Positions 1,615 to 55,209 of a DNA stretch of 64,000 nt are shown one piece after another (within the stretch, counting starts at the first letter, position 1; each line of letters opens with the position of its first letter). A model generated the notes under the pieces. It was given only the letters and a program-made list of their open reading frames with translations, made no database searches and was not told the origin of the DNA. Location: positions 62,001 through 126,000 of the forward strand of contig JAKMXF010000314.1 in the NCBI GenBank assembly GCA_024704765.1. Reading direction: 5' to 3'. This DNA comes from Oopsacas minuta. Lineage: Eukaryota; Animalia; Porifera. Made by a program: the position numbers and the translations under genes.

Positions 1615-4063
1615 AACATAAAAACTAATAAAGATGAATATATAAGGTTAAATTCTAAGCTATAATGAAGAATTACAATAATTAAGGTTGCGTCTCAAAT
1701 ATGAGGGGTCTGTATCGCGCATGGCATGTGCAGCTGGTACGGCAGAGCCATTGCCTGCCCAATTTTTGTCATGACCTGAACAATTTATATTACCGAAACG
1801 GCAAAGGCCGGATCAATCCCAATTAGCATCCCCTGGCCCCCGTGACGTCATTGTTTATAACTCAAAGGGAAATCTTGGAATTCTTCTAAGTATTAATCAA
1901 ATTGAGATATATCTTACAGGATGTTACAAAATTAATACCCAATCAAATAAAATAAGTTTCTTTCCAGGGGCCGTATTGGAATGACATAAATCCTTTATTA
2001 TTTAATATATATACCATAAGTCTTCAAGGTACGAGTTTCAATATACTAAGTTCACGATTTGCCTATTTTGTCTTTTTTCCCCGCGACCTACAAACTTTTA
2101 ATGGATGGGTTCAGAAAATATTGGAATTATAAATTATTTTTGCACGCTACGTTCGCAGTTATATTATTAGATAAATATATACTGTTTTGCGTTTTCTAAT
2201 ATTGGGATTGGTCAATTTTTGAAATTTTGATTCGTGATCATCAATCCACAACGATGACGTCATCACTATGGTTGGTACTGTGTCTGTCTAACATTTAAAT
2301 CACTACATCAACTGCAAGAAGCCCTTAATCTCAAATAAAAACGGAATTATTTAAGCATTCAAATAATTTGTGACGTCAGGTTAGTCAAAATTTTCGAAGT
2401 CCCATTTTTTGGAATGTTGCTTTGTCATAACCACTATGAAGACTTCAACTTCATTACCTAATGTGTCTGTCCTGACATCTCGTTCCCTCCATCAATTGTA
2501 AGTATTACTCTAGCTGTCATCGTTGTAAAGTTTTTAGAGTTTCAAGTTTTATGTGGTTTATGACGGCACACAAGATGCTTTTATTGTGTCTATATTTATT
2601 ATTACATAGTCTAGCGGATGTCTACTAAGTTTTGTTTAGTATTTGTGATCGAAGATAGAAGAATATTTATGTTTTTCAATAGATAATGTTTGCATACAAA
2701 AGTCAAATTTGTATATGAATACTTCAGATACCACAGTTAAATTAGTCAAAGAAATATTGATCGGGAAAATCTGGGCAATTAAATTCTAATTAAACTAAAT
2801 TGTGTTTACGAATAATTATTCAAAATTGCAGTACTTAAATCCCATGAAAAATTTCGATAATTGTCGAAAGAAAAGCTGTGGGTGGGTACTAGAGGGTGAT
2901 AAAATTATATGTTAAAAAATGAGCGCTAGCAAATTCTTGAACTGCTATAATCTGGAGGATGTAATTCTGAATCTAATGGATTTATTTCTGGTGGTGGCAC
3001 ATGTGGCATATCTTCATGGTGGCACGAATGTGTCAAATTGTGTCAGATAAAAATCGGGGACTAAGGTGTGCATATTAACACATCATCACTAACCTGTTTC
3101 AACTTTTAATCTTAAACCGTGTGGGCTGTGGGCCGTAGACAGAACTTACAAAAAAAGCACTGAGATCAAAACTGAGGACCATACTATAGTATAGTCGGCA
3201 GAGTAAAACAAAAATCATAAATTACAATCTGTGGCGACAGCATTAAATTAAATTTGTTTAGTAGTTGCTCTAGGAAGTAGAGGCACAATCAACTGTAAAA
3301 TTTACCCCCTTTACTCATAATACCTCCAATTACATACAGTTAAACCTTACGCCCAGGTTTTTGTCCGGGGATTATTTATAGGAATTATTAGGGTAATGTT
3401 CGGGAAAATCTGTTTTTAGGGTGTGTAGATCATCCAATCAATATTGTAGTCTGTCACCATATTCAAATATATATATATATCCTCTTGAGATTACTACCTC
3501 ATTTTATATTAATGGTTGGTAGATATAGTCCAGTTTGCTAAAAACAGTTAGTCACACATTTAATCTTGCATGAGTATGACTTAACATTCCAACTTAGATA
3601 AGCTCAGTATGGCATGCTACAAACACCTACAGATCTTTCATTTTATAGAATGTAGGGTTTTTCAGAAAAAGCGATAATGTCCAGGGTTTTGGAAAGACCT
3701 TCTTGCCACACTAAATGTAACATAAGCGATTATATGAGGTACCTGGGGCCTTATCAACTAAAAGTCTAAGAATTATTCTTAACTAAATTCCAAGTGTATT
3801 TCTAAGAATAATTTTTAGAATTACCCAATTCTAAGAAAAATTCTTAGAATTGGGTAATTCTATTTGATTGATTCTTGCTATTGATTAATAAAATTTATGC
3901 CAATTCATTCGATTTCAATCGCTTTTTGAGAAGATATGCACATAGTAGAAAATAAAATCCTTCTACTTGTATACTTCATTTATCATTAATGACATAAATT
4001 GTCCCACCCAATAGAAAAGGATATTCATTGCATTTCTCATTTGTGTACTATTGTACAAACTCA

Positions 4064-5071
4064 TGGCCTCGCATATCGTACGTTTTGGAGCTGGAAATAG
4101 GCAGTTTACGATAGCAAGGAATATTTCGTGACAGGTTAAACTCTCTTGATGCGTACACAGATGTAGAGTTTATTTCTCGTTATAGAATCAGAAGAGAAAT
4201 GTTCTTAGAATTGCATGATAATATTGAGACTTTCATGTCTCGATCTACAAGCCGATCTCATTCGCTTTCGGTGACAACTCAATTAGCGGTCACTCTTCAG
4301 ATTCTAGCTACGGGTAGTTTCCAAACTGTGATTGCACCAGCTCATCGAATTTCCCAGCCCCCTGTGTCCAACTGTGTTAAAGGTGTAACAGATGCATTGT
4401 GCTCAATTGCGATAGACTATATACAGTTTCCAACTGCTGCTAGACAGATGAGCATGCAGCATGGATTTACATATGGAAAAGTTCGGGTTTCCTAAGTATT
4501 AGGTTGCATAGACGGCACACACATCCCAATTGTTGCACCTAGCACCAACGAAGCTATTTATGTTAATCGTAAAAGTTTTCATTCAATTAACGTCCAAGCG
4601 TATGTGACGATGTATTTAAATTTATTGATGTAGTTGTGAAGTGGCCAGGCAGCACACATGACGCGTTCATATTGCAGGTAATCAGGAATCAATCTTAAGA
4701 TCGCCAGTAAACAATTCCAATTATTGATGGGTGGTTTCTCGGTGATAGTGGTTATCCGTTGCGCCTAAATTTAATGACTCCATTACTATCTCCTGTTACA
4801 GCTCGCGAAAGAAGTTATAATCGTGCTTTCCTGGAAACTTGAAAGACAATTGAATTGAATGCACCTTTGGAATAGCAGATGGAGATCAATGGACAAGACT
4901 GCCGGCAGTTTGTGCTATTGCTCAATGAGGGTTTGCAAACTAATCTTATCTTCCATGATACTTCATAATTTTTGTGTTGATTGCGGTCTCCAAATTGATA
5001 TTGAAATTTGGAAAGTGACATGCCCTAAACCGAAACAGACTACACTGAATATTCAGATAATGGAGTTTTAG
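4064..5071 (+). pseudogene. Harbinger (HARBI1-like, DDE_Tnp_4) transposase with stops and frameshifts
   Basis: Motifs across frames: [65 protein letters not shown]; CAG-to-TAG-type stop near 4108 and several frameshifts. Confidence 0.9.
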
Positions 5072-6814: not shown

Positions 6815-7485
6815 GATGCAACCACAGTTTGGAAACTGCCCGTAGCTAGAAACTGAAGAGTGACCGCTAATTGAGTTGTCACCGAAAGTGAATGAGATCG
6901 GCTTGTAGATCGAGACATGAAAGTCTCAATATTATCATGCAATTCTAAGAACATTTCTCTTCTGATTCTATAACGAGAAATAAACTCTACATCTGTGTAC
7001 GCATCAAGAGAGTTTAACCTGTCACGAAATATTCCTTGCTGTCGTAAACTGCCTATTTCCAGCTCCAAAACGAACGATATGCGAGGCCATGAGTTTGTAC
7101 AATAGTACACAAATGAGAAATGCAATGAATATCCTTTTCTATTGGGTGGGACAATTTATGTCATTAATGATAAATGAAGTATACAAGTAGAAGGATTTTA
7201 TTTTCCACTATGTGCATATCTTCTCAAAAAGCGATTGAAGTCGAATGAATTGGCATAAATTTTATTAATCAATAGCAAGAATCAATCAAATAGAATTACC
7301 CAATTCTAAGAATTTTTCTTAGAATTGGGTAATTCTAAAAATTATTCTTAGAATCAGTTAAGTATAGCCAAGTTAAGAATTCATAATGAAACCTATGAAT
7401 ATTTCATGAATTCTTAGAATTATTCTTAGAAATACACTTGGAATTTAGTTAAGAATAGTTCTTAGAATTTTAGTTGATAAGGCCC
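6815..7485 (-). mobile_element. Second, truncated copy of the Harbinger left end plus 5' transposase
   Basis: Reverse complement of 3746-~4335 with roughly ten substitutions and an extra ~75-bp subterminal segment; breaks off after FQTVVAS at a CAGTGGTG hAT-like terminus. Confidence 0.9.
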
Positions 7486-41482: not shown

Positions 41483-42309
41483 CTAAATACATTACAAGAT
41501 GTAAAGAAACAAGGGGTACTCACATGCTCAATTCCAATGATAATGAGATTTATTTAATGATTACAGATTTACCTGACCTTAGCATTCTATTCATAAGGCA
41601 ATGTCGCGCTTACCAAATTGAAACAAGGGATAAGCTAGTAAATATATATACATACAAAGGAAAATATTCGTACTCATAATATGAAAATGTTACAATAGTA
41701 ATCGTGGATTGGGAGAAAAGTGACAATAACAATACGGAGTATATGTATTTGCATATATATATATGCATTAAACCAATTGAGTGCAGGGGAATAATGCAGT
41801 TCCCATTACTAGTGCCACGTCATTTTCCTCGTTTTCACAAATTTTGTTGTCAAAAGTTTTCTGCATATCAAACTAAACTAAATACTAATACTACATATAA
41901 TGTGGTGAGAATTATCTCGTGAATAAGTATTTCATGCAACTTCGTATGTACGCTAACAGAACAAAAGTATATAAACAACACAAATTATACTATTGTACAT
42001 CTTGGCCAAATGGTGAATATTTGAATATGCATAAGGTGTTATGCTTGGAATTCTGCCATAGGTGCTATCATCTATTCTGATTTTGAACATAACATTAATG
42101 TTTCTCTACCACGTCTGGGTTTTTGGAAAATAATGAATTTAATTTATTAAATTTTCTCATAATTTTATCTTTAACCTTCAGGAAATTAATATATATTACA
42201 TTAATTTCTATATATTTAGATTCAATGATAATTCTTACGTCAAGTAGGCCTTATGTACTTCATTTTTGCATTTTTGCCAAATGATTGAACATACGGTATT
42301 CAAATTACT

Positions 42310-42930
42310 GAATTTTACAGGTTTCGGCGACGGAGCCCACTCACACAACTTTCAAGAATTGTCGGTATTCATAAGTTCTGAAGAAAGCTACTTAATTACT
42401 TAATTATTTTCTGATATATGGCCAAGTAGATGGTACGTCATTATAGCATTACATAAATACGACTGCAATAATAAAATAATGGCTTGCATCTGTGTACATA
42501 TATTTGAGAGAAGCTTCAACAAGACAGACATTAAGTCCCTTAGAAATCCAAATTCGACTTCAAAATCTAGACATGTGTATTCTTAGATGATGTGAATGAC
42601 GGACATCTATACTATTAAAACGAATTAATCTATACATTTATATGTATATATATGTTTGTATGGTCAGAATAGATTGAAAAAACTGGAGCAATCCGAGGGC
42701 TGATTTTTGGCATACAGTGCTATTTTGGGTATGGCTCGTGAAATTAGTGTCGGAAGAAAATTAACTCATAAATGAAAAATTGACATCATTGTCACCTTTT
42801 GGAGCGGTCGTTGTGACGTAACTACATGATGAAGTAACATATATTTGACCATATATCAGTAAAAATTTAAAAATAAAGTAGCTTTCTTCAGAACTTAAGC
42901 AGAGCGATTATCAGAAGCTGTAAAATAGAC
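42310..42930. mobile_element. Foldback/MITE in the CYB5D1 intron
   Basis: Inverted blocks AAGTTCTGAAGAAAGCTACT / AGTAGCTTTCTTCAGAACTT and CTGATATATGG / CCATATATCAG. Confidence 0.55.
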
Positions 42931-43582
42931 AAACTGCCTTGTCAGAAATACTAGGACCATTTAGGCTGCTGAAGTTAGGGTGAGGGTGTGGCTCACTTGA
43001 CTGCAGCTTTCAAAATACGAATAATTTAAACGCAATAAGACCCATTAATTTGGCAAGATAAAAAATGAAGCTCATGATGTAGTCTTCACGAATGAATGAT
43101 CAGTAAATACAAATATATATAAATTAATAGAATAAATATCAATTTCCTGAAAGTCCAAGATAAAAATGTGAGAAATATATCACAAAATAGAAAATGAAAT
43201 TCTCATTACGCAGAACAAATGTGGAAAGACAAGTTATTATCGGAATCAGAATTGGAGAAAGCATCTAGTGAAATACGTATACCTTGTTTGTGTTTTACTT
43301 TTGCTGTTGAACTGTGTTTATAATAATTGTCAAAACCCCAATACGGTATATAATGGATATAGCGATAAGGTCGAGGAGACAGAACTGTATTTTATGAAAG
43401 ATCTGTTGCGTAGGATTTTGACCCGCATGTAGCATTCCAAATCAAGTAATATCAACATTTCATCCCTAGTCACATAGTATTCGTATTTATACATGTGTGA
43501 CTTCCTAAATGCACACACTAACATTTTACTTTGTCTCTAGATTTCAACATCAACACTTATATTACTTTTGACATTTTTCATT

Positions 43583-46500
43583 ATGGATGCAACAGAGTAT
43601 GGAGCAATTGGTGAATACCTCCAGACGAATATTATCACACCAGAAATCAAAAGTGATCGCTACAGAAAGAAGAAGTTTGTCAGAGAGTGCAAGGGGATTT
43701 ACTGTCAAGAGAATAAGCTAATGAAGGTATATTCCTTAACTGATATTTTTGATTTATACTTATTTCCGAGACATAATTAGAAATCTTGAGGCAGCTACAT
43801 ATGTGTGAGGAGGCAGATATGTAGTTGCCTCATTAAATTTGCGTATCATAGGGAGATGAGAAGGGCGAAAACGCTAGGGGCTCCTCTGCCCCTCAATGCT
43901 ACCAATAACCTCTGCGTTTAACTAGAATAATTTTCTTGTAGATTTTCAGAAAGAAGAATGGCTGTGTGAAATACTTGGAGATTCCACTAGTCTCAGAAAT
44001 TGACAACATTATCGGATTCTATCACAATGTCACTCATCCTGGAATCAACACTACCATTGATGGAATCTGAAACAAATATGATTGGAATGGCATATACAAT
44101 GATGTTGGATCCTACGTGAGTTACTAAATTACGTAATTCTTTCATATAGGATTTTCCAAGAAAATGTGGCTGAGAACACAGACTTACCAACACTCCAGGG
44201 ATTCCTGGATTACAAATTTTGAAAATCCAGGGATTTAGCAACGAAAATCCAGGGAAATTTGCAAAAAGGGTTGGTAAGTCTGAGAACAGCATGTAGTTTA
44301 TAGTTTAAGGTTATTCACCTTGCAATTATTCTACTGAATACAGCTTTATTTGTGCGATTGTAAAATTTTTATTGTGCGATCTGATGATATTTAGTATACC
44401 GGTATACAATTTTATCATATGGAAATCTATTTGTGCGGTACAACCAACCAACCATGTATCTCACAACGAAGGATCCTTGCGGTAGTTAGTAATTGGGATA
44501 GGTAATGGGAATATTTCACATAAACACATTTGTCAACCTGGATGAAGAAAAATCGGGACAGAATGCTAATTTAGTGGACATCTGGGGCGTAGCAAATTAC
44601 ATTAGACTGGACTACAAACTGACAATTAAATCATTTCCCGTTCTAGATCCGAACTTGCCATGACTGTCAAACCTCTGCTGCTCTACCTCCTCAGCCACAA
44701 CAAGAGCTTCAACCTGTTCCTCCTCCTGGAGAACCATGGTGTCATTGTGGAATTGATCTCATATGCAATATCCCTCGCACTGTACTTTGGTTTCAGCACA
44801 TTCTTGTCATCGTGTGCTACCTGAGTAAATTTGTAATTGCCCGACCACTCAAGACTAAAACTTCTAAAGAAATATTGGATTGTTTACAGGAAATTTATCT
44901 CTCATTCGGTGTGCCTAACATCCTCCAACATGATCAGGGAACAGAATTCTCAAGCAAGGTAACTCATATTTTTACATACTCGAGATTAGTAATTGTAAAT
45001 ACACCAAGTAAATTATTCCTGATACACAATGCAACTTACTATATTGGATATACGTACGTAACAAGTTGCATTGTCAATTGTCAACGCATTGCTTCAATAT
45101 ATACCCTGGTAGGAAATTATGCGTCCTGATGGCCATATTTAAGAAACCGTGTGGAAAATTGGATTTTAATTTATGTTAAATACTAATAAATAAGAATTTA
45201 CGAATTAATGCTACTAACTTCGGGAGGAAAATTTACCTTATTAATCGTTTTATCTTTCTTACTATTGTTGTACAAGACTAAATACATGCGGGTAGTAGAT
45301 TGTCATTGTTCTCTTATTTACTTTCAAAATAGGAATTTCAGGAATTTCACAAGAAGATAAATATCAACACCAGAAGAACCACAGCATACCACCCACAAAG
45401 TAACGGACTTGTTGAATCACACAACAAAATATTGAAAACGTGAGTATTGATGCTAATTATAAATATATACCTATGCTAAGCCTTACATACGTTTAATACA
45501 CGTCGTTTATAATTAGATAGCTTTGAATCAATTTAACACTTTTACAAATAGAAAAATCAACAAGATGCAATCTGATGGGGACACTGAATGGACAGAGAAA
45601 TTACAGACAGCAGTACTAGCAGCAAATACTCAAACCAAAAATCTCTACAAGCTACACACCCTTCTATCTCATGTTTGGGAGAGACTTTGATTCATCTAAC
45701 CTTCTCAATCTTATCACTTCTCCAACTAACCCCGGATTACTAACCGAAGCTGATATCTCAGAGGCAGAAGTATCAGAAGATGAGAATATTCAAATGGATG
45801 CAAACGAACCACGCCCATTTGACTTTCCTATAATTGATAACGAATGGATAGAAAATCTTTCTTCCACACGTAAAGCTGACAGGATGACTGCTATTGAAAA
45901 CATCAAGGCTGGTCAGAAAGTTCAAAAGAAAACATATGACAGCAAAGTTAAACACAACAGGTAAGCAATAACGAAACACAGTCTTGTTGTGATGTAACAT
46001 GTTGGAATTTCATACATCATCTCTTACTAAAATTAAATTAAATTCACTGACTGTTGTATATTCAGATAAATATGAAATAATCTTGAATCGGAACTAATCT
46101 ATTGTTTCCTCAATTATATGAATTCTTAAATTCCAAAACACTTACTTTTAGTTATATAATTAGCATCATTACAAACTGTACGTAATTGGCACATTATTTT
46201 CTTTGTATAATCATTGTGTAAACTTTAGATCAGAATTTGTGGAAGGAGATGAAGTACTTGTACATAATATAAAGAAAGCCAAGCGACTCCCAGGAACAAA
46301 AGATGCAAAGAAATATTTGGGGCCATATACAATAGAGAAAGTTAAACCAAGCCACCTAGTTGCTCGCAAAGACCCAGATAGCAAAACAACAAAATTACCT
46401 ATCCATCTATCAAGAAAATATCATTCTCGCATGAACGAAAAACGGCAGGTTCGAACGAAGACAGGCAAATCAAAGAAGCCCAAAAGATCTTGCAAATTCC

Positions 46501-47915
46501 CTTCTAGCGGTAAATATATTAGCGAGACAATATTGTACTGAACTATAACTAATTGACTCAGCCCATGATTAAGTACATATAAACTAGTTGTGTTCTGTAT
46601 TGATTCGATTAATATGTAATAGCAATCCTACATTTCACATATTTATTTGTATTTAGATTCTTTGGATGATATATTGAACCTGGATACCATGGAAGAAACA
46701 TTTGAAACACCGCAACAACACTCAATCTATGAAAATATCGATTCTGAGCTACTTCAATTGAAACCTCGAATACTATCAGCTCTTGTCAATGACACATACT
46801 TAACCCAACTACATGAGAAACTCGCTACAAAAGCTGCATCTCTAACTTCATTGAATTTACTATATTCTTACCATCCACCCGACGAACTAAATTTTGAGAT
46901 TAAGGAGAAACTTGCTGTATCAGCCGGTAATTGGTACGCAGAATATCGTTCCTCCTATCCTACTGAAATACCTGAAGAGACACGAAGAGATCTTGACTAT
47001 CCGATTGCTGTTCTATTACCAGTAATAATTGAGTTAATATTCCCAACTGAGCAAGTTCATGAGATCATTGAAATACCGGAACAATCTATACAAAATGCAT
47101 CAGATCTTATCCCATATCCTAAATGGGGAGGAGAGTATAACAACACCGTGTAATCTAACACCTGTTCTATCGACAATATATTGGCTATTCTTAGTTCGAA
47201 TAAAGCAACCATCATAGACTCACTGAAGTTAATCGGAAGTACACATATTGAAGCTGAATTCTACTACATATTCCAATTGGCTGCTAATTGTGAATTTGAG
47301 AAACTTCGAGAATATGTTGCTACTAAAATTGGGCTTGAAGTTATTTATGATTCCTCAGGATTGATACGGTCTTACGATTTCTTTGGATCAGAGGGTAACA
47401 TCATCAAATATTTACGAACAGAAGATTTGTGTAACGACAAATATTTCACTATCTTCCAATGCCACCAATGCACCAATATCTTTGAGACACAATCCATGAT
47501 TAGTAATATAGGAGGCGTTATTACAAACCTGGAATCATCTGTTAATCGAAGTCTCGTTCCTATTAAATGCAAGTCTTGTGGATCAACTACTGCTGTCTTA
47601 GAGAGGATATCTGGTCAATTCAAGTCAATACCTGTCATGCAAACAATTGAAATCGGACATCTACCCGAATTGCCAGACATTTTTGCAAGTGATATTGACA
47701 AACACTTTACCATCAGTCACAACCAACGGACACTTCACTACCAACTTGCTGGCTTTAGCATATTGAGTAATAGACACTTCTATTCAATCCTTTACCAAAA
47801 CGGGCAATTCTATAAATATGACGGAATGAGAGAACCAATTATCCAACTTTGGGACTGTGACACTTTCATCGGATCACTCAATACTGTATTCTATCTCTTG
47901 CACTCTTCTGACTAA
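43583..47915 (+). pseudogene. Ginger-type (Gypsy-integrase-like DNA transposon) gene, 7 exons: HHCC finger, D-D35-E integrase, GPY, and USP-like cysteine protease
   Basis: GT-AG exons 43583-43726, 43942-44115, 44647-44958, 45333-45439, 45552-45960, 46229-46509 and 46657-47915 join in compatible phases. Motifs YHN..HPGIN..CHDC, GIDLI, HDQGTEF, AYHPQSNGLVE, YTPFYLMFGR, LGPYTI, NTCSIDN, RHF..FYKYDGM. Lesions: TGA in exon 2, frameshift ~45640, TAA at 47151. No RT, RNase H or LTR seen. Confidence 0.85.
44179..44282. mobile_element. 104-bp MITE inside Ginger intron 2
   Basis: TIR CAGACTTACCAAC / GTTGGTAAGTCTG; internal TCCAGGGA repeated three times; AGAACA on both flanks. Confidence 0.65.
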
Positions 47916-47948
47916 TTCTTAGCGATTCACGACTCTTTTCCATCATTC

Positions 47949-48178
47949 GAAAGCGCTCAAAGGCAAGGTACATCGAACTTTGTGGGGACCTCTGCCCGAG
48001 GTTATTCAGGCAACGCAATCCCTATCATGGTGAGCCCAGATAATGGAAACGCGACCTGCAACAGCACATCCCCAGTGGCGAATATCATCACTCTACCATC
48101 TAAGTATATTGCGAGAAAGGCAGCGCAACTGACGAGTCTACGCCGAGACGAAATACAGCATGGAATCAGATACAAGCG
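47949..48178 (+). repeat. GC-rich non-coding repeat carrying a hammerhead ribozyme (copy 1; retrozyme/SINE-like)
   Basis: Homologous to 53585-53817 (-). Differences are mostly non-synonymous in the frames checked; TGGGGA/TCCCCA and the ATCATGG(T/C)GAGCCCAGAT hairpin are retained. Confidence 0.75.
48104..48156 (+). ncRNA. Type III hammerhead ribozyme, predicted cleavage after A48108 (AUA triplet)
   Basis: GTAT-A-TTGCG-agaaaggcag-CGCAA-CTGACGA-GTCT-acgccg-AGAC-GAA-ATAC: complete core with fully paired stems I (5 bp), II (4 bp) and III (4 bp). Confidence 0.82.
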
Positions 48179-49311
48179 AATTTCTTATCTATTTTTTAAT
48201 GTCTCCTTGTCTGTGGCCGTTCGGGGTCCGTTAGCTCTCGCGTGTCTGTTAAATTACGATTCATTGTACGTGTTCATTTATGTTGCAGCTTAGAATCAAA
48301 TTTGGTGTGATCGCAATCACATCAAACTGGCTCCAACACTGCACACATAAACAACGCGAGGTTAACGTTAAACGTTTAGCGTTAGGGGGTGGCTGTAAGG
48401 GGAAGGAAGAGGCCACCGTAGCTAACTTGTTTTGTTTCTAGAAATCTAGTGTTTTCCAGGAGTATGCAGCGTGCCAGAGGCTAGCGGTTTTCACCTCCAC
48501 TCTATATGTGTATCAACATTATACCAAGACTCCCGTAACAAATGCATAGTCTACGCTTGCCCAATTGATGAACATATTTCAGTGGTATATTCCTTAAAGC
48601 TTGTTAGGAAGTATAGATAAATGGCAAAGATGAACTCGCCTACAATTCGTACTTAAGATATTCCGAATATTCAGTATCATGCTAATGCTTGCAAAATTTT
48701 TGTTATTGATAGAATATATTGCAATATATAGATTGACATGTTAAATTATATTATTTATTATGAGTTATTAATACAATTATCAAACTCCTACCACCTTCTG
48801 TCCAAGTAATATTATTATAAAATATTTATATATACCTGTCTATTTTTGGCATTTTGGATAATTATACATATTGTAAATTGGTAATACGTAGTGGGAACAT
48901 AGTTTACATGTTATCAAACAAATTCACTACTTTCTAGAATCCAAATCTAAATTGACTTGTTTATTCAGTTACGTATACGTATGGCAAGTCTAAAGTTGAA
49001 TTCATTATGTACATTTAGTGGTAATTACGTAATGAAAGTGTATGGAATTTGTAAAAGTCAAATGACAGAGAAGTAAGATTACTTTAGGGTCAAAATCCCA
49101 CGACCATAATACATTTTGATGCGGGTCAAAATCTTACACATAAATTACATCGTAGGATTTTGCCCCGCACCATGGATATTTCAAAGACCTAGAACTTCTT
49201 GTCTATAACGGCCATTCAAGGCTAGTAGTAACTATTATGTACAGGTAACCGCTATGTAGATGTAGATTACTAATAAAAATATATTCATATACTAAGCGTT
49301 ATAATGAAGCT

Positions 49312-49731
49312 CTAGATATTATGTAAACTGTCATTCATAAACTCTTCGATATCACTATCGTCTTCAAATGACAGGGACATGGGCTCATTGTTGATGACCA
49401 TCGCAACTTCCTTAGGCTCGATTGTAATTTCCAGCTTCTTGATTATTGTGATATACTTTTTCTGGTATCTGATGTATAATAATTCCTTCATGACCACCGG
49501 TGACATTCTCTTTCTCATTTTTGAAAGTAGGTTGCCGGCATGGCAGAACAACCTCTCCACGGCTGCAGAAGATATTGGTGCAGATAAAATTATCTTTGCA
49601 CAGGTTCGCAGACGTGTTAAGACACTGTACCGCCAAAACTGAGTTGGATCCTCCATTGGTACCCGGGTGTCTCTGAATTCTTGGAGCTCTATATCAAGAG
49701 GAGTAACCTTTTGCCTTTTGGCTAGCAACAC
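49312..49731 (-). pseudogene. hAT transposase C-terminal dimerisation-domain fragment
   Basis: ELQEF..DPTQFWR..LRTCAKIILSAPISSAAVERLFCHAGNLLSKMRKRMSP..LLYIR; upstream transposase not traceable. Confidence 0.8.
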
Positions 49732-50942
49732 CAGAATTCACGAGTGAAAGGGATGAATAGCAATAGCAATAATTGCATCATAATTGCATAGTAATTTGTT
49801 ATCTTTCACCAACATAGATCTTGAAAGAATTCAAAAGTTTAGATGAAATCTGGCACTATTCACGACACAACAATTGCTGACATTACAATTATTGGCTACC
49901 TACACGACTTCACCGATCTTACCGATAATAACTAATTTTCCATCATAATCGATTCTCAATTGGGAAATCAAATAATTTCATAATTTGAAATTCATACGGT
50001 ATGAAATAATAATCGTGTGGTGCTGGTTAGTCACATGCAATACACCAGCTTAGCAGATGGGGCTAATTGATGGGGCCGGTAAAAATTTAGATGGGGCGCT
50101 AGCCCCATCTAACTCATGCTAGAGCCGCCACTGAACAACACTAGAAGTGTACTTAGTAATATTGTTAATTTAATCATAACAGCATCCCTATTATTGAATA
50201 TCCCATGGATATCCATATCCACGGCAAGTCTGATAGATATGCTATTGGGATTTTGTATTGCGGACAAGATACTATGCAGCAGATCCATACAAAAGAAAAT
50301 ACATATTCAGAAAATAATACACAGCTTAAATTATTTAGTGGGATATGTTTCATTACTGATATTGTCAAACAAAGAAATGTTTGTTTCATTTCATATTTTT
50401 TGTTGTTTAAGTAAATAAAACAAATTCTATACAAGTAATAGTAATTCTACTCCAGGAGTTTGGGGAAAATTTTGTTTTTGACTGAATAACGAAGCTGTGA
50501 TATACAAAATATCGACGTGATAGGCAAAAATGGATAACGCTTTGGACTCAGCCGACAGGAATTAGCAATGCAACTTGTATGGTTTGTGTAAATGCTGTCG
50601 CCCAGTATTATCAATATATATGATTTTGTCGGTATACAATAAATGCAACACGGTAATTCCTTGAGTAAGAGCCCGGGCGCATATTCTTTTCGTGGTGATA
50701 ATTTCATATAAATTCTTTACAATTTTTTAAAACATAAATGATTCTAGGGAAACAAATTATAGTTTGTTGACAGTCAAATGAGCAGTAAATTGTATAAAAA
50801 CAAAGAAGAATTTTAGAGGGTGAGGATAATTTCTATTCAAAAGGCTTTTCCATGCCTACGACGCTCATCGAAAGAAATATGGTATATCAAATTGGATAAA
50901 TCGTTTCCTGAAGGGATTTCCTGAAGCTTTTTTGGTGATTTG

Positions 50943-53584: not shown

Positions 53585-53817
53585 GCTTTATTGCGTTCCA
53601 AATGTTTCGTCCTGTCATAGACTCCTCAGTTGCCTCGCCTTTTAGCTAATACACATCAAATGGATCAGTGTTATTGAATGTTTACGCCACTGGGGATATA
53701 CCGTTGCGGGTCGCGTTCCCATTATCTGGGCTCGCCATGATTGGGATAACGTAGCCTGAATAGCCTCGGACAGAGGTCCCCACAAAGTTCGATGTACCTG
53801 CCTTTGAGCGCTGTCGA
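53585..53817 (-). repeat. GC-rich non-coding repeat carrying a hammerhead ribozyme (copy 2)
   Basis: Diverged reverse-complement homolog of 47949-48178. Confidence 0.75.
53602..53654 (-). ncRNA. Type III hammerhead ribozyme, predicted cleavage after minus-strand A53650 (GUA triplet); stem I imperfect
   Basis: Minus strand GTGT-A-TTAGCTAAAAGGCGAGGCAA-CTGAGGA-GTCT-atgaca-GGAC-GAA-ACAT; same 53-nt length as copy 1; A-U to G-C compensatory pair in stem III. Confidence 0.65.
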
Positions 53818-53904
53818 AAACTATTTCTATGGAAGTTGAAGAATGAATGCAAGACGCTATTCAAATATTAACGAATTAAATAAAAAGTCTTGATCGTTAG
53901 TCTA

Positions 53905-55209
53905 CAGAGGCCAATAAGTTCTGGGACATAACTTTATATCGTACCAAAATCTTTCATGATTTAGATTGATTGACGTTACTGGTTTGTATTTATTCTGTTA
54001 TCTCTCGCTATACAATATTTATTGAAAAATACACTATTTGAAAACCAAAAACAAATTATCAGCTATGGAGAAAGAATAGTCGGCGATTGTTGAATTATTT
54101 CAAAAAAGGAAAAACAGAAGGAAATAATGAAACTTTAAAAAATTACCCAGACACGTCGGAATTTCGTAATCCGTACGATAAAACGTTTCAATGAGACTGG
54201 TAATGTGATCAGGACAGAGCCAGAACTGGTCGCCCGGTCTCCATCACGACCGTAAAGATGCGAAAGGTAGTGCGGAGTCGAGTGTGGGGAAATCCCCAGC
54301 GATCGATCAGAAAAATGCTAAAGAACTGAAAATATCCCGTGGATCTCTTCAAACGATTGTCAAGAGAGATTTAGGGCTATCTTAGTTTAAGAGAAGGAAA
54401 GTCCATTCCTTTCAGACAAAATAAAGACAAAGAGGCTCTCAAAAAGCAAAGTCCTCCATACACGACTCGGAGCCCAGGGGCTGGATCAAGTCCTTTTCTC
54501 TGATGAAAATTTTTCAGCATTGAACAAGCATTCAATCTTCAAAACGATAGAATATTATCTAAATCACTTCTACTATCCCTGATGAGTATAGGTACGTCAA
54601 AAGGGTCCAGAAACCACTCTCGTTGATGGTTTGGGCGGAGTATCTTCTGTTGGCCGGACACCACTGGTTTTCGTCCCTGCAGGGGTCAAAATCAATGTTG
54701 CAAAGTAAAAGGAGCTCATTTTACAGCCCATTGTGAAAGATCTTGGTGAGATGATGTTTGAAAACCAGCCGTTTATATTCCAACAAGACGGTGCTCCTGT
54801 CCATACAGCAAACAGTACTCCGGAATGGCTTCAGACAAATATTCCTGACTTTATCTCAAAGGTAGAATGGCCGCCATCTAGCCCAGACCTCAACCCTCTA
54901 GATTTCTCAGTGTGGTCCATTTTAGAGTCAAGTGCTTGCTCGAAGTCCCATAACAGTATTGAGTCTCTAAAGCAATCTCTGACGAGAGAATGGGCAAAAA
55001 TCCCACAGAGATGCTGCATACCGTAGTGTGGACAGTCCCCGGGCGTTTGAAGGCTGTTATCAAAAAGGAATGCGGATACATAGAATAGAGATTGTGCACA
55101 ATAAAACTCATAATGCCTAACTACTCATGCTAAAACATCAACTCAATATAATGAATATTGATTAAATTATAATAGTTTTTCTATGTGTCAGAACTTATTG
55201 GCCACCCTG
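53905..55209 (+). mobile_element. Tc1/mariner maT-type (DD37D) transposon with a decayed transposase (54065-55088)
   Basis: TIR CAG(A/GGT)GGCCAATAAGTTCTG with TA flanks; LFSDE, FQQDGAPVH, and WPPSSPDLNPLDF with 37 residues between the second and third D; many frameshifts. Confidence 0.92.

Follow-up and report, generated by a model that had tools for sequence, protein, structure and literature searches.

The window, that is, the whole stretch of 64,000 nucleotides of Oopsacas minuta DNA that was analysed, contains a Ginger-type DNA transposon on the forward strand at 43404-50281. Its ends were set by comparison with the paralogue L002 and other homologous loci, and both ends were read: the termini are 5'-TGTTG...GCA-3', with TGTTG at 43404, and a 4-bp target duplication, GATC, is found on both sides of the element (43400-43403 and 50282-50285). 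The left terminal inverted repeat, TGTTGCGTAGGATTTTGACCCGCA, is 24 nt long (43404-43427, forward strand), matches the far end of L002 and has a degenerate partner at 50258-50281, and subterminal copies of the terminal-repeat motif, GGATTTTGACCCGC, are present at 49085-49168. The right terminus is displaced by a nested, non-autonomous hAT-type insertion of 1,053 bp (49180-50232), which lies outside the ribozyme cassette described below and is missing from L002. This insertion has an 8-bp target duplication, with the flanks ATGGATAT and ATAGATAT, and an ORF on its reverse strand (49312-49731) has a hAT dimerisation domain. A right end at 49140-49179 had been considered and was replaced by 50281 once the nested insertion was seen. 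Just to the left of the Ginger element, at 42153-43175, are long imperfect inverted repeats (115 nt at 77% and 67 nt at 73%), which suggest a foldback or MITE-like insertion. Elsewhere in the window the core-pattern scan picked up two identical 35-nt stretches in inverted orientation 2.5 kb apart, at 4266-4300 on the reverse and 6853-6887 on the forward strand, and these are probably the terminal repeats of another element.

The transposase gene contains introns and has a probable integrase core and no reverse transcriptase (RT). Its last coding exon (47181-47915, forward strand) specifies a C-terminal zinc-ribbon-like and protease-like part and ends, according to the ORF list, with the stop codon TAA at 47913-47915, and an upstream exon of the same gene (44812-45129) carries the match to the integrase core domain (rve). 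This Pfam match was obtained with one exon only and had an E-value of 7e-5 and a score of 23.4 bits against a cut-off of 32.6; the transposase expected of a Ginger element is a Gypsy-integrase-like DDE enzyme. There were 27 homologues of the protein encoded by the last exon, and the best of them, 98% identical, was from O. minuta, which by itself points to this glass sponge or a very near relative as the origin of the window. Pfam searches with the last exon and with P0001 and P0005 gave weak zinc-ribbon matches only and no OTU or Ulp1 domain. According to the Ginger description (PMC2836005), the hallmarks of these elements are TGTNR termini and a 4-bp target duplication, the published duplication being CCGG/CCGT. 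Ginger1 and Ginger2 (Bao, Kapitonov and Jurka 2010, PMC2836005) are like the element in the window in TGTNR termini, a target duplication of 4 bp, and a transposase, here probably of the integrase type, with introns and an extra C-terminal domain, and unlike it in that here the duplication is GATC and not CCGG/CCGT and in that Pfam found neither the OTU domain of Ginger1 nor Ulp1. The passages of that paper that were consulted mention no ribozyme or conserved 3'-UTR RNA.

The motif that is the subject of this study, a type III hammerhead ribozyme of 53 bases with its core bases and three paired stems, lies on the forward strand at 48104-48156, 190 nt past the transposase stop codon. The limits of the element, as set by comparison with L002, place it inside the transposon. 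The initial annotation had assigned the motif to unannotated non-coding DNA and had inferred a possibly undescribed mobile RNA family as its carrier. It sits instead in the 3' untranslated region (UTR) of the Ginger-type transposon, of which it is a fixed part, and the primary carrier is this cut-and-paste DNA transposon. The hammerhead stands at the 3' end of a cassette some 210 nt long, which begins with a 135-nt structured RNA domain (47946-48081, forward strand) and continues with a variable linker (48082-48103, forward strand) that is 22 nt long here and longer, with indels, in other lineages. The domain is made up of a closing helix, P1, a 7-bp side hairpin and a long multi-helix arm. 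An ORF that runs across the cassette gave seven matches when used as a protein query, and these were uninformative.

When the forward strand was read from 48104 to 48156, every invariant hammerhead position and the type III topology were found just as the initial annotation had described them. Stem III is formed by GUAU and AUAC and has just 4 bp in this copy, and these include the A15.1-U16.1 pair that a hammerhead requires, which is U48107-A48153. The cleavage-site base H17 is A48108, a non-G base as required, and the cut is predicted between A48108 and U48109. Stem I (UUGCG/CGCAA) is capped by the 10-nt loop AGAAAGGCAG and is followed, correctly placed, by the core strand CUGACGA (C3-U4-G5-A6-N7-G8-A9). 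Stem II (GUCU/AGAC, with G10.1-C11.1) is capped by the 6-nt loop ACGCCG, after which GAAA (G12-A13-A14) closes the core and is followed by UAC. Thirteen pairs are formed in all, and stems I and II are capped by loops while stem III is open, as in the type III topology. The GGC of loop 1 and the GCC of loop 2 could pair with each other; these triplets are kept in 94% of the alignment cells and their pairing is without covariation.

The motif alone proves nothing, and this follows from its Rfam score and from its chance rate. Against the Rfam family Hammerhead_3 (RF00008), which has a gathering score of 48.5 bits, the hammerhead in the window scored 19 bits (E = 0.5 in 1.1 kb, at a permissive threshold) and that of L003 scored 22.8 bits, which is also below 48.5. 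No match at the gathering score was found when the whole window and all loci were scanned against Rfam. The low RF00008 score reflects the curated model, for which mostly sequences of plant pathogens were used, rather than the fold. When 300 random 64-kb sequences were scanned with a lax type III descriptor, two had matches, which is about one per 10 Mb, and in a whole genome or in a scan of this size the motif by itself could thus arise by chance. The 61-nt hammerhead stretch folded no better than shuffled sequence, and the whole cassette likewise gave no thermodynamic signal over shuffled sequence (z = +0.7 to +0.9). It had been proposed initially that the idea would fall if the covariance-model score was not significant and no homologous copies kept the core. 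The score was indeed not significant, and homologous copies that keep the core were clearly found. What lifts the motif above chance is, on the sequence comparisons given below, a second copy in the window, the homologous loci, and a pattern of substitution like that expected of a hammerhead.

Protein homologues of the last exon were used to fetch 13 loci from the O. minuta assembly and from five ENA assemblies. In all 11 transposon loci among them (L001-L011, from O. minuta and four other assemblies) the domain and the hammerhead were found downstream of the transposase gene, with the domain preceding the hammerhead in each. The hammerhead motif was present in 12 of the 13 loci and was missing only in L012. 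The short contig L013, from the fifth ENA assembly, has two further hammerhead copies, which were left out of model building and scored 90.6 bits with the family model. We had considered L012 and L013 as transcripts and rejected this, as both are genomic-type contigs. The distance from the called ORF to the domain was 9 to 59 nt in seven of the 11 transposon loci and is 31 nt in the window. Beside L001 there is a RhoGDI host gene whose product has 83% identity with its O. minuta counterpart and about 54% with a demosponge protein, from which it follows that the L001 assembly is from another glass sponge. At least one of the assemblies, judged by this host gene, is thus from a different glass sponge.

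The way in which these loci differ from the copy in the window, copy A, depends strongly on the region that is compared. In lineages other than the close paralogue, identity to copy A was 45-72% in the CDS, 23-40% in the spacer after the stop codon, 82-96% in the 135-nt domain, 35-64% in the linker, 81-89% in the hammerhead, and 26-48% in the 350 nt downstream of the hammerhead. The domain is therefore the best conserved part of the whole transposon, above the CDS, and the linker and the downstream part do not rise above background. Homology across lineages ends about 15-40 nt past the hammerhead and picks up again only at the terminal repeats. Within the hammerhead, the share of non-majority cells in 12 copies was 1.9% for the 13 core positions, 0.8% for stem I, and 1.4% for the loop triplets GGC and GCC, and it rose to 6-8% for stems II and III, to 17-22% for the other, free loop positions, and to 25-36% for the hammerhead flanks. 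There were three core changes, H17 A>U in L006, G12C in L004, and G5A in L008. The first of these is allowed for a hammerhead (the 12 copies other than L006 have A at H17), and the other two are core-killing changes, each seen in one copy, so that the catalytic core is invariant in 11 of 13 homologous copies with L004 and L008 as the exceptions. The hammerhead structure was paired in 96.9% of the cells of 12 copies, against 22-47% when the partners were slid. Stem III shows a compensatory change between A-U and G-C, and stem II shows one between U-A and C-G with a U-G intermediate in copy B, the second copy in the window. L013 combines the stem II state of Oopsacas with the stem III state of the other lineages, and the two changes are therefore separate events. 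This covariation amounts to few events among related sequences, and for that reason the case rests mainly on where variation falls. In our judgement the locus very probably has a genuine type III hammerhead that is held by selection as a part of a Ginger-type transposon. Of the original proposal of a functional self-cleaving RNA from a mobile RNA family, a very probably functional, selected hammerhead survives, with its core kept, its stems II and III compensating and its loop triplets conserved, and the mobile RNA family as the primary carrier does not.

The 135-nt domain was analysed in the same way. RNAalifold gave a closed multi-helix fold with 46 predicted pairs, and in 12 copies 97.1% of 548 cells were paired, with double changes in five pairs; examples are those between G-C and U-A in P1 and between G-C and A-U in the long arm, in five to six sequences each. 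All shuffles and slid controls scored lower than this fold, which was derived from the same sequences. Because several G-U pairs are invariant, the fold can be assigned to the sense strand, which is also the strand of the ribozyme and of the gene. RNAalifold also proposed a long-range helix between the 5' end of the domain and stem I and the core strand of the hammerhead. It was rejected, as all its pairs are invariant and the rival helix, P1, covaries between G-C and U-A. An Rfam search with the domain found no family even at E ≤ 10, and two conserved words of its sequence, used as patterns, had no matches in collections of viral, metagenome and prokaryote-genome sequences. In published papers, words of the domain sequence occurred in unrelated primers only.

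What could a hammerhead behind such a domain do for the transposon? The leading explanation, although somewhat less probable than not, is that the two together form the 3' end of the transposase mRNA. Transcription of the element would run through the intron-containing transposase gene, the hammerhead would fold in the nascent RNA and cut itself after A48108, and the cut would part the ORF and the folded domain from the remaining transcript, in which the splice-donor-like motif is followed by repeats and by the terminal inverted repeat of the right end. The mRNA would then end in a 2',3'-cyclic phosphate about 27 nt past the folded domain (more in other lineages), its short 3' UTR would be almost wholly folded domain, and the domain may cap this 3' end without need of poly(A) and so help the mRNA to be stable, exported or translated. 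What the comparisons show is how the motif is built, where it lies, how it is conserved and covaries, and to which strand it belongs; the cleavage itself is inferred, as is all that the cleaved mRNA and the domain would do. When the claim of a selected hammerhead and the 3'-end-formation role are blended, we consider the whole to be somewhat more probable than not. A broader reading is that hammerhead and domain are a dedicated two-part RNA device of glass-sponge DNA transposons, by which the mRNA receives a 3' end set by the ribozyme and independent of poly(A), or by which a discrete structured RNA required by the element is set free, and that the domain is a new functional RNA class able to spread or persist without the ribozyme; so broadly put, the proposal is doubtful.

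The region just downstream of the ribozyme bears on whether all transcripts would be cut. At 48172-48181, on the forward strand, is a motif like a 5' splice site, for which the family consensus is CAA|GTGAGT (or GTAAGT), located 19-25 nt after the ribozyme. GT[AG]AG is found at this site in 10 of the 11 fetched loci (in L001 at about 4055-4065) and in both L013 copies, and the motif is degenerate in the window copy (GCGAAT) and absent from copy B. Its conservation suggests that uncleaved transcripts may matter too. Use of the candidate donor would place an exon junction complex on the ribozyme's 3' strand, and splicing and cleavage might therefore compete. AATAAA is found close behind the ribozyme in L003, L005 and copy B. 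Further downstream, about 200 nt past the ribozyme, L001 has a tandem array of a 21-nt unit (TGCGGTCTGTTAATATAGCAG) at 4239-4673, with 20.8 units and 92% matches. Similar 21-nt arrays are found in the other non-Oopsacas lineages (L003-L008, L010 and L011), and the Oopsacas copies have about one such unit, near 48244-48262 in the window.

A rival reading is self-restraint of the transposon, in which the cut in the 3' UTR removes the tail, destabilises the transposase mRNA and keeps its dosage low, and the domain has an unrelated role, such as export of the intron-rich RNA or protein binding. The hammerhead in the 3' UTR of rodent CLEC2 genes has been proposed to lower dosage through tail removal, and the one described here has the same position, in the 3' UTR and on the sense strand. 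From the splice-donor-like motif 19-25 nt downstream one would expect a longer isoform that is uncleaved or spliced, which would allow cleavage to be a regulated switch, and an AATAAA soon after the ribozyme in three copies (L003, L005 and copy B) fits as well. Self-restraint is unlikely, however, as it leaves unexplained why the best conserved sequence is directly upstream of the cut and why in most lineages the stop codon is within tens of bases of the domain.

The second copy in the window, copy B, was found by the core-pattern scan, which showed a second core at 53605-53629 on the reverse strand. It is a solo cassette at 53602-53818 on the reverse strand, with the domain at 53685-53818 and the hammerhead at 53654-53602, and it lies inverted, 5.4 kb from copy A. 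Copies A and B are 81% identical over 216 nt, with the homology confined to the cassette; the 135-nt block is 90% identical, and the homology stops just past the ribozyme. The core of copy B is intact, cleavage is predicted after A53650, and the copy scored 64.7 bits with the family model, which found no further hammerheads. It is degraded in other respects, as stem I is imperfect (a bulge or two mismatches) and the GCC of loop 2 is lost. We considered whether copy B is a decayed full transposon and rejected this, as neither a nucleotide nor a protein remnant (tblastn) was found. Its surroundings show no evident poly(A) tail, no target duplication and no pol III boxes. Directly upstream of copy B, at 53909-55203, is a 1.3-kb element with 22-nt inverted repeats (GGCCAATAAGTTCTGGGACATA and its complement, 91%), which is probably a Tc1/mariner-type remnant.

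The abundance of the domain was examined in public runs, in which the matches are assembled contigs of unspecified library type and no pile-up of ends was listed. In the run of the best-matching organism the whole transposon was covered evenly by many variants of 90-99% identity, and this indicates a multi-copy transposon family. In runs X15 and X6, which are from two other organisms, the depth was 20-30 times higher over 47946-48081 only. The edges are sharp: in X15 the match begins at 47946/7 in 30 contigs and ends at 48081/3 in 16, the flanks being varied, and one contig of 213 nt covers just the cassette. The depth in the next bin is explained by the domain alone, and therefore the domain is much more abundant than the hammerhead in X15 and X6. 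The domain is there either an independent repeat in very many copies or an RNA that is strongly expressed, and such abundance of the domain without the hammerhead in the runs of two other species is not predicted by the idea of a 3' cap. In L012, which is from a further assembly and is the contig without a hammerhead, the first 29 nt of the domain are present four times in both orientations (1232-1262, 1559-1587, 2931-2959 and 3103-3131) and there is an inverted partial domain at 1318-1419, an arrangement that is due either to rearrangement or to an assembly artefact.

Copy B and the abundance of the domain by itself leave some room for a cassette that spreads independently. It would then have been a small RNA element of its own, SINE-like or retrozyme-like, that was captured early by Ginger, and the ribozyme would process the cassette's own RNA. 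The solo copy with the same boundaries and no transposon remnant, the shared contig edges at 47946/7 and 48081/3 with varied flanks and 20-30 times the depth in X15, the 213-nt contig that spans just the cassette, and the conservation of the domain above that of the CDS can all be read in this way. Against this, each unit has only one ribozyme and the units are neither in tandem nor dimeric, from which it follows that no unit-length or circular RNA could be released; a poly(A) tail, a target duplication and pol III boxes are not evident around copy B; the cassette has the identical position in all fetched Ginger lineages; and the excess depth in X15 and X6 is due to the domain and not to the hammerhead. 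Independent capture is, on balance, quite improbable. That the motif is not catalytic at all, and that its hammerhead-like pattern is a by-product of selection on something else, for instance on a site in the DNA or on an RNA fold that does not cleave, agrees with the sub-threshold Rfam score and the lack of a thermodynamic signal but is very improbable, as variation spares exactly the catalytic and base-paired positions and is found where a hammerhead is free to change, both variable stems change by compensation, and H17 changes only to another allowed base.

A hammerhead held in a transposon mRNA and paired with a folded domain has partial parallels in other systems. The hammerheads of the rodent CLEC2 3' UTR, which are discontinuous, and of amniote introns are in host genes and are split or type I. 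They resemble the one described here in being sense in a protein-coding transcript downstream of the stop codon, and they differ from it in having no conserved companion domain. R2 and other non-LTR retrotransposons have HDV-like ribozymes at the 5' end. There too a mobile element trims its own mRNA by its own self-cleaving ribozyme, as is predicted here, but the ribozyme is of another class, acts at the 5' end, and belongs to retroelements. By analogy, a cut just beyond a conserved structure near the stop codon would recall the histone mRNA stem-loop and the MALAT1 triple helix with its tRNA-like cleavage; those cuts are the work of proteins or RNase P, in structures of an unrelated kind, and no U-rich or A-rich triple-helix features were seen in the cassette.

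Models based on retrozymes or Penelope-like elements, to which hammerheads of this kind might have been assigned, do not hold, because the ribozyme is single, its topology is type III, and the gene appears to be of the integrase type. A retrozyme has at least two hammerheads in direct repeats or tandem units, and here there is one per element with no tandem or dimeric arrangement; a Penelope-like element has a type I hammerhead, terminal repeats, and RT with GIY-YIG, and here the hammerhead is type III and the gene has a probable integrase core and no RT. The plant LTR retrozymes and viroid-like RNAs represented in RF00008 share the catalytic core, the topology and loops that could touch, and have similar helix lengths, with 5 bp in stem I and 4 bp in stem II. 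Theirs are two copies in direct repeats from which circular RNAs are released, whereas the hammerhead described here is single and sits in the 3' UTR of an animal's DNA transposon, with an Rfam score well below threshold. Penelope-like elements, Terminons and metazoan non-LTR retrozymes are alike in having an element-borne hammerhead near the 3' end of the transcript. Their hammerheads are type I, often minimal and dimer-acting, and are hosted by RT/GIY-YIG retroelements or tandem repeats (PMC7761336, PMC6431247), unlike the single type III hammerhead of this integrase-type cut-and-paste element. Reviews assign type III hammerheads to plants, prokaryotes and infectious circular RNAs, and those of animals to type I (PMC7761336, PMC7229834). 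In our full-text search of the published literature, neither DNA transposons nor sponges turned up as carriers of a described hammerhead, and there was no description of a hammerhead paired with a 135-nt folded RNA.

The known settings of eukaryotic hammerheads are retroelements, satellites, viroid-like RNAs and a few host genes, with type III regarded as the plant and pathogen form. If the reading of the locus is true, the 3' UTR of a cut-and-paste DNA transposon in glass sponges (Hexactinellida) would be a new setting for self-cleaving ribozymes. The companion domain, conserved above the transposase and matching no Rfam family, is a lead in its own right, and the cassette as a whole is a handy annotation marker of this Ginger-type transposon family. 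The finding would also make it testable whether a ribozyme together with a folded RNA can replace polyadenylation for a natural eukaryotic mRNA.
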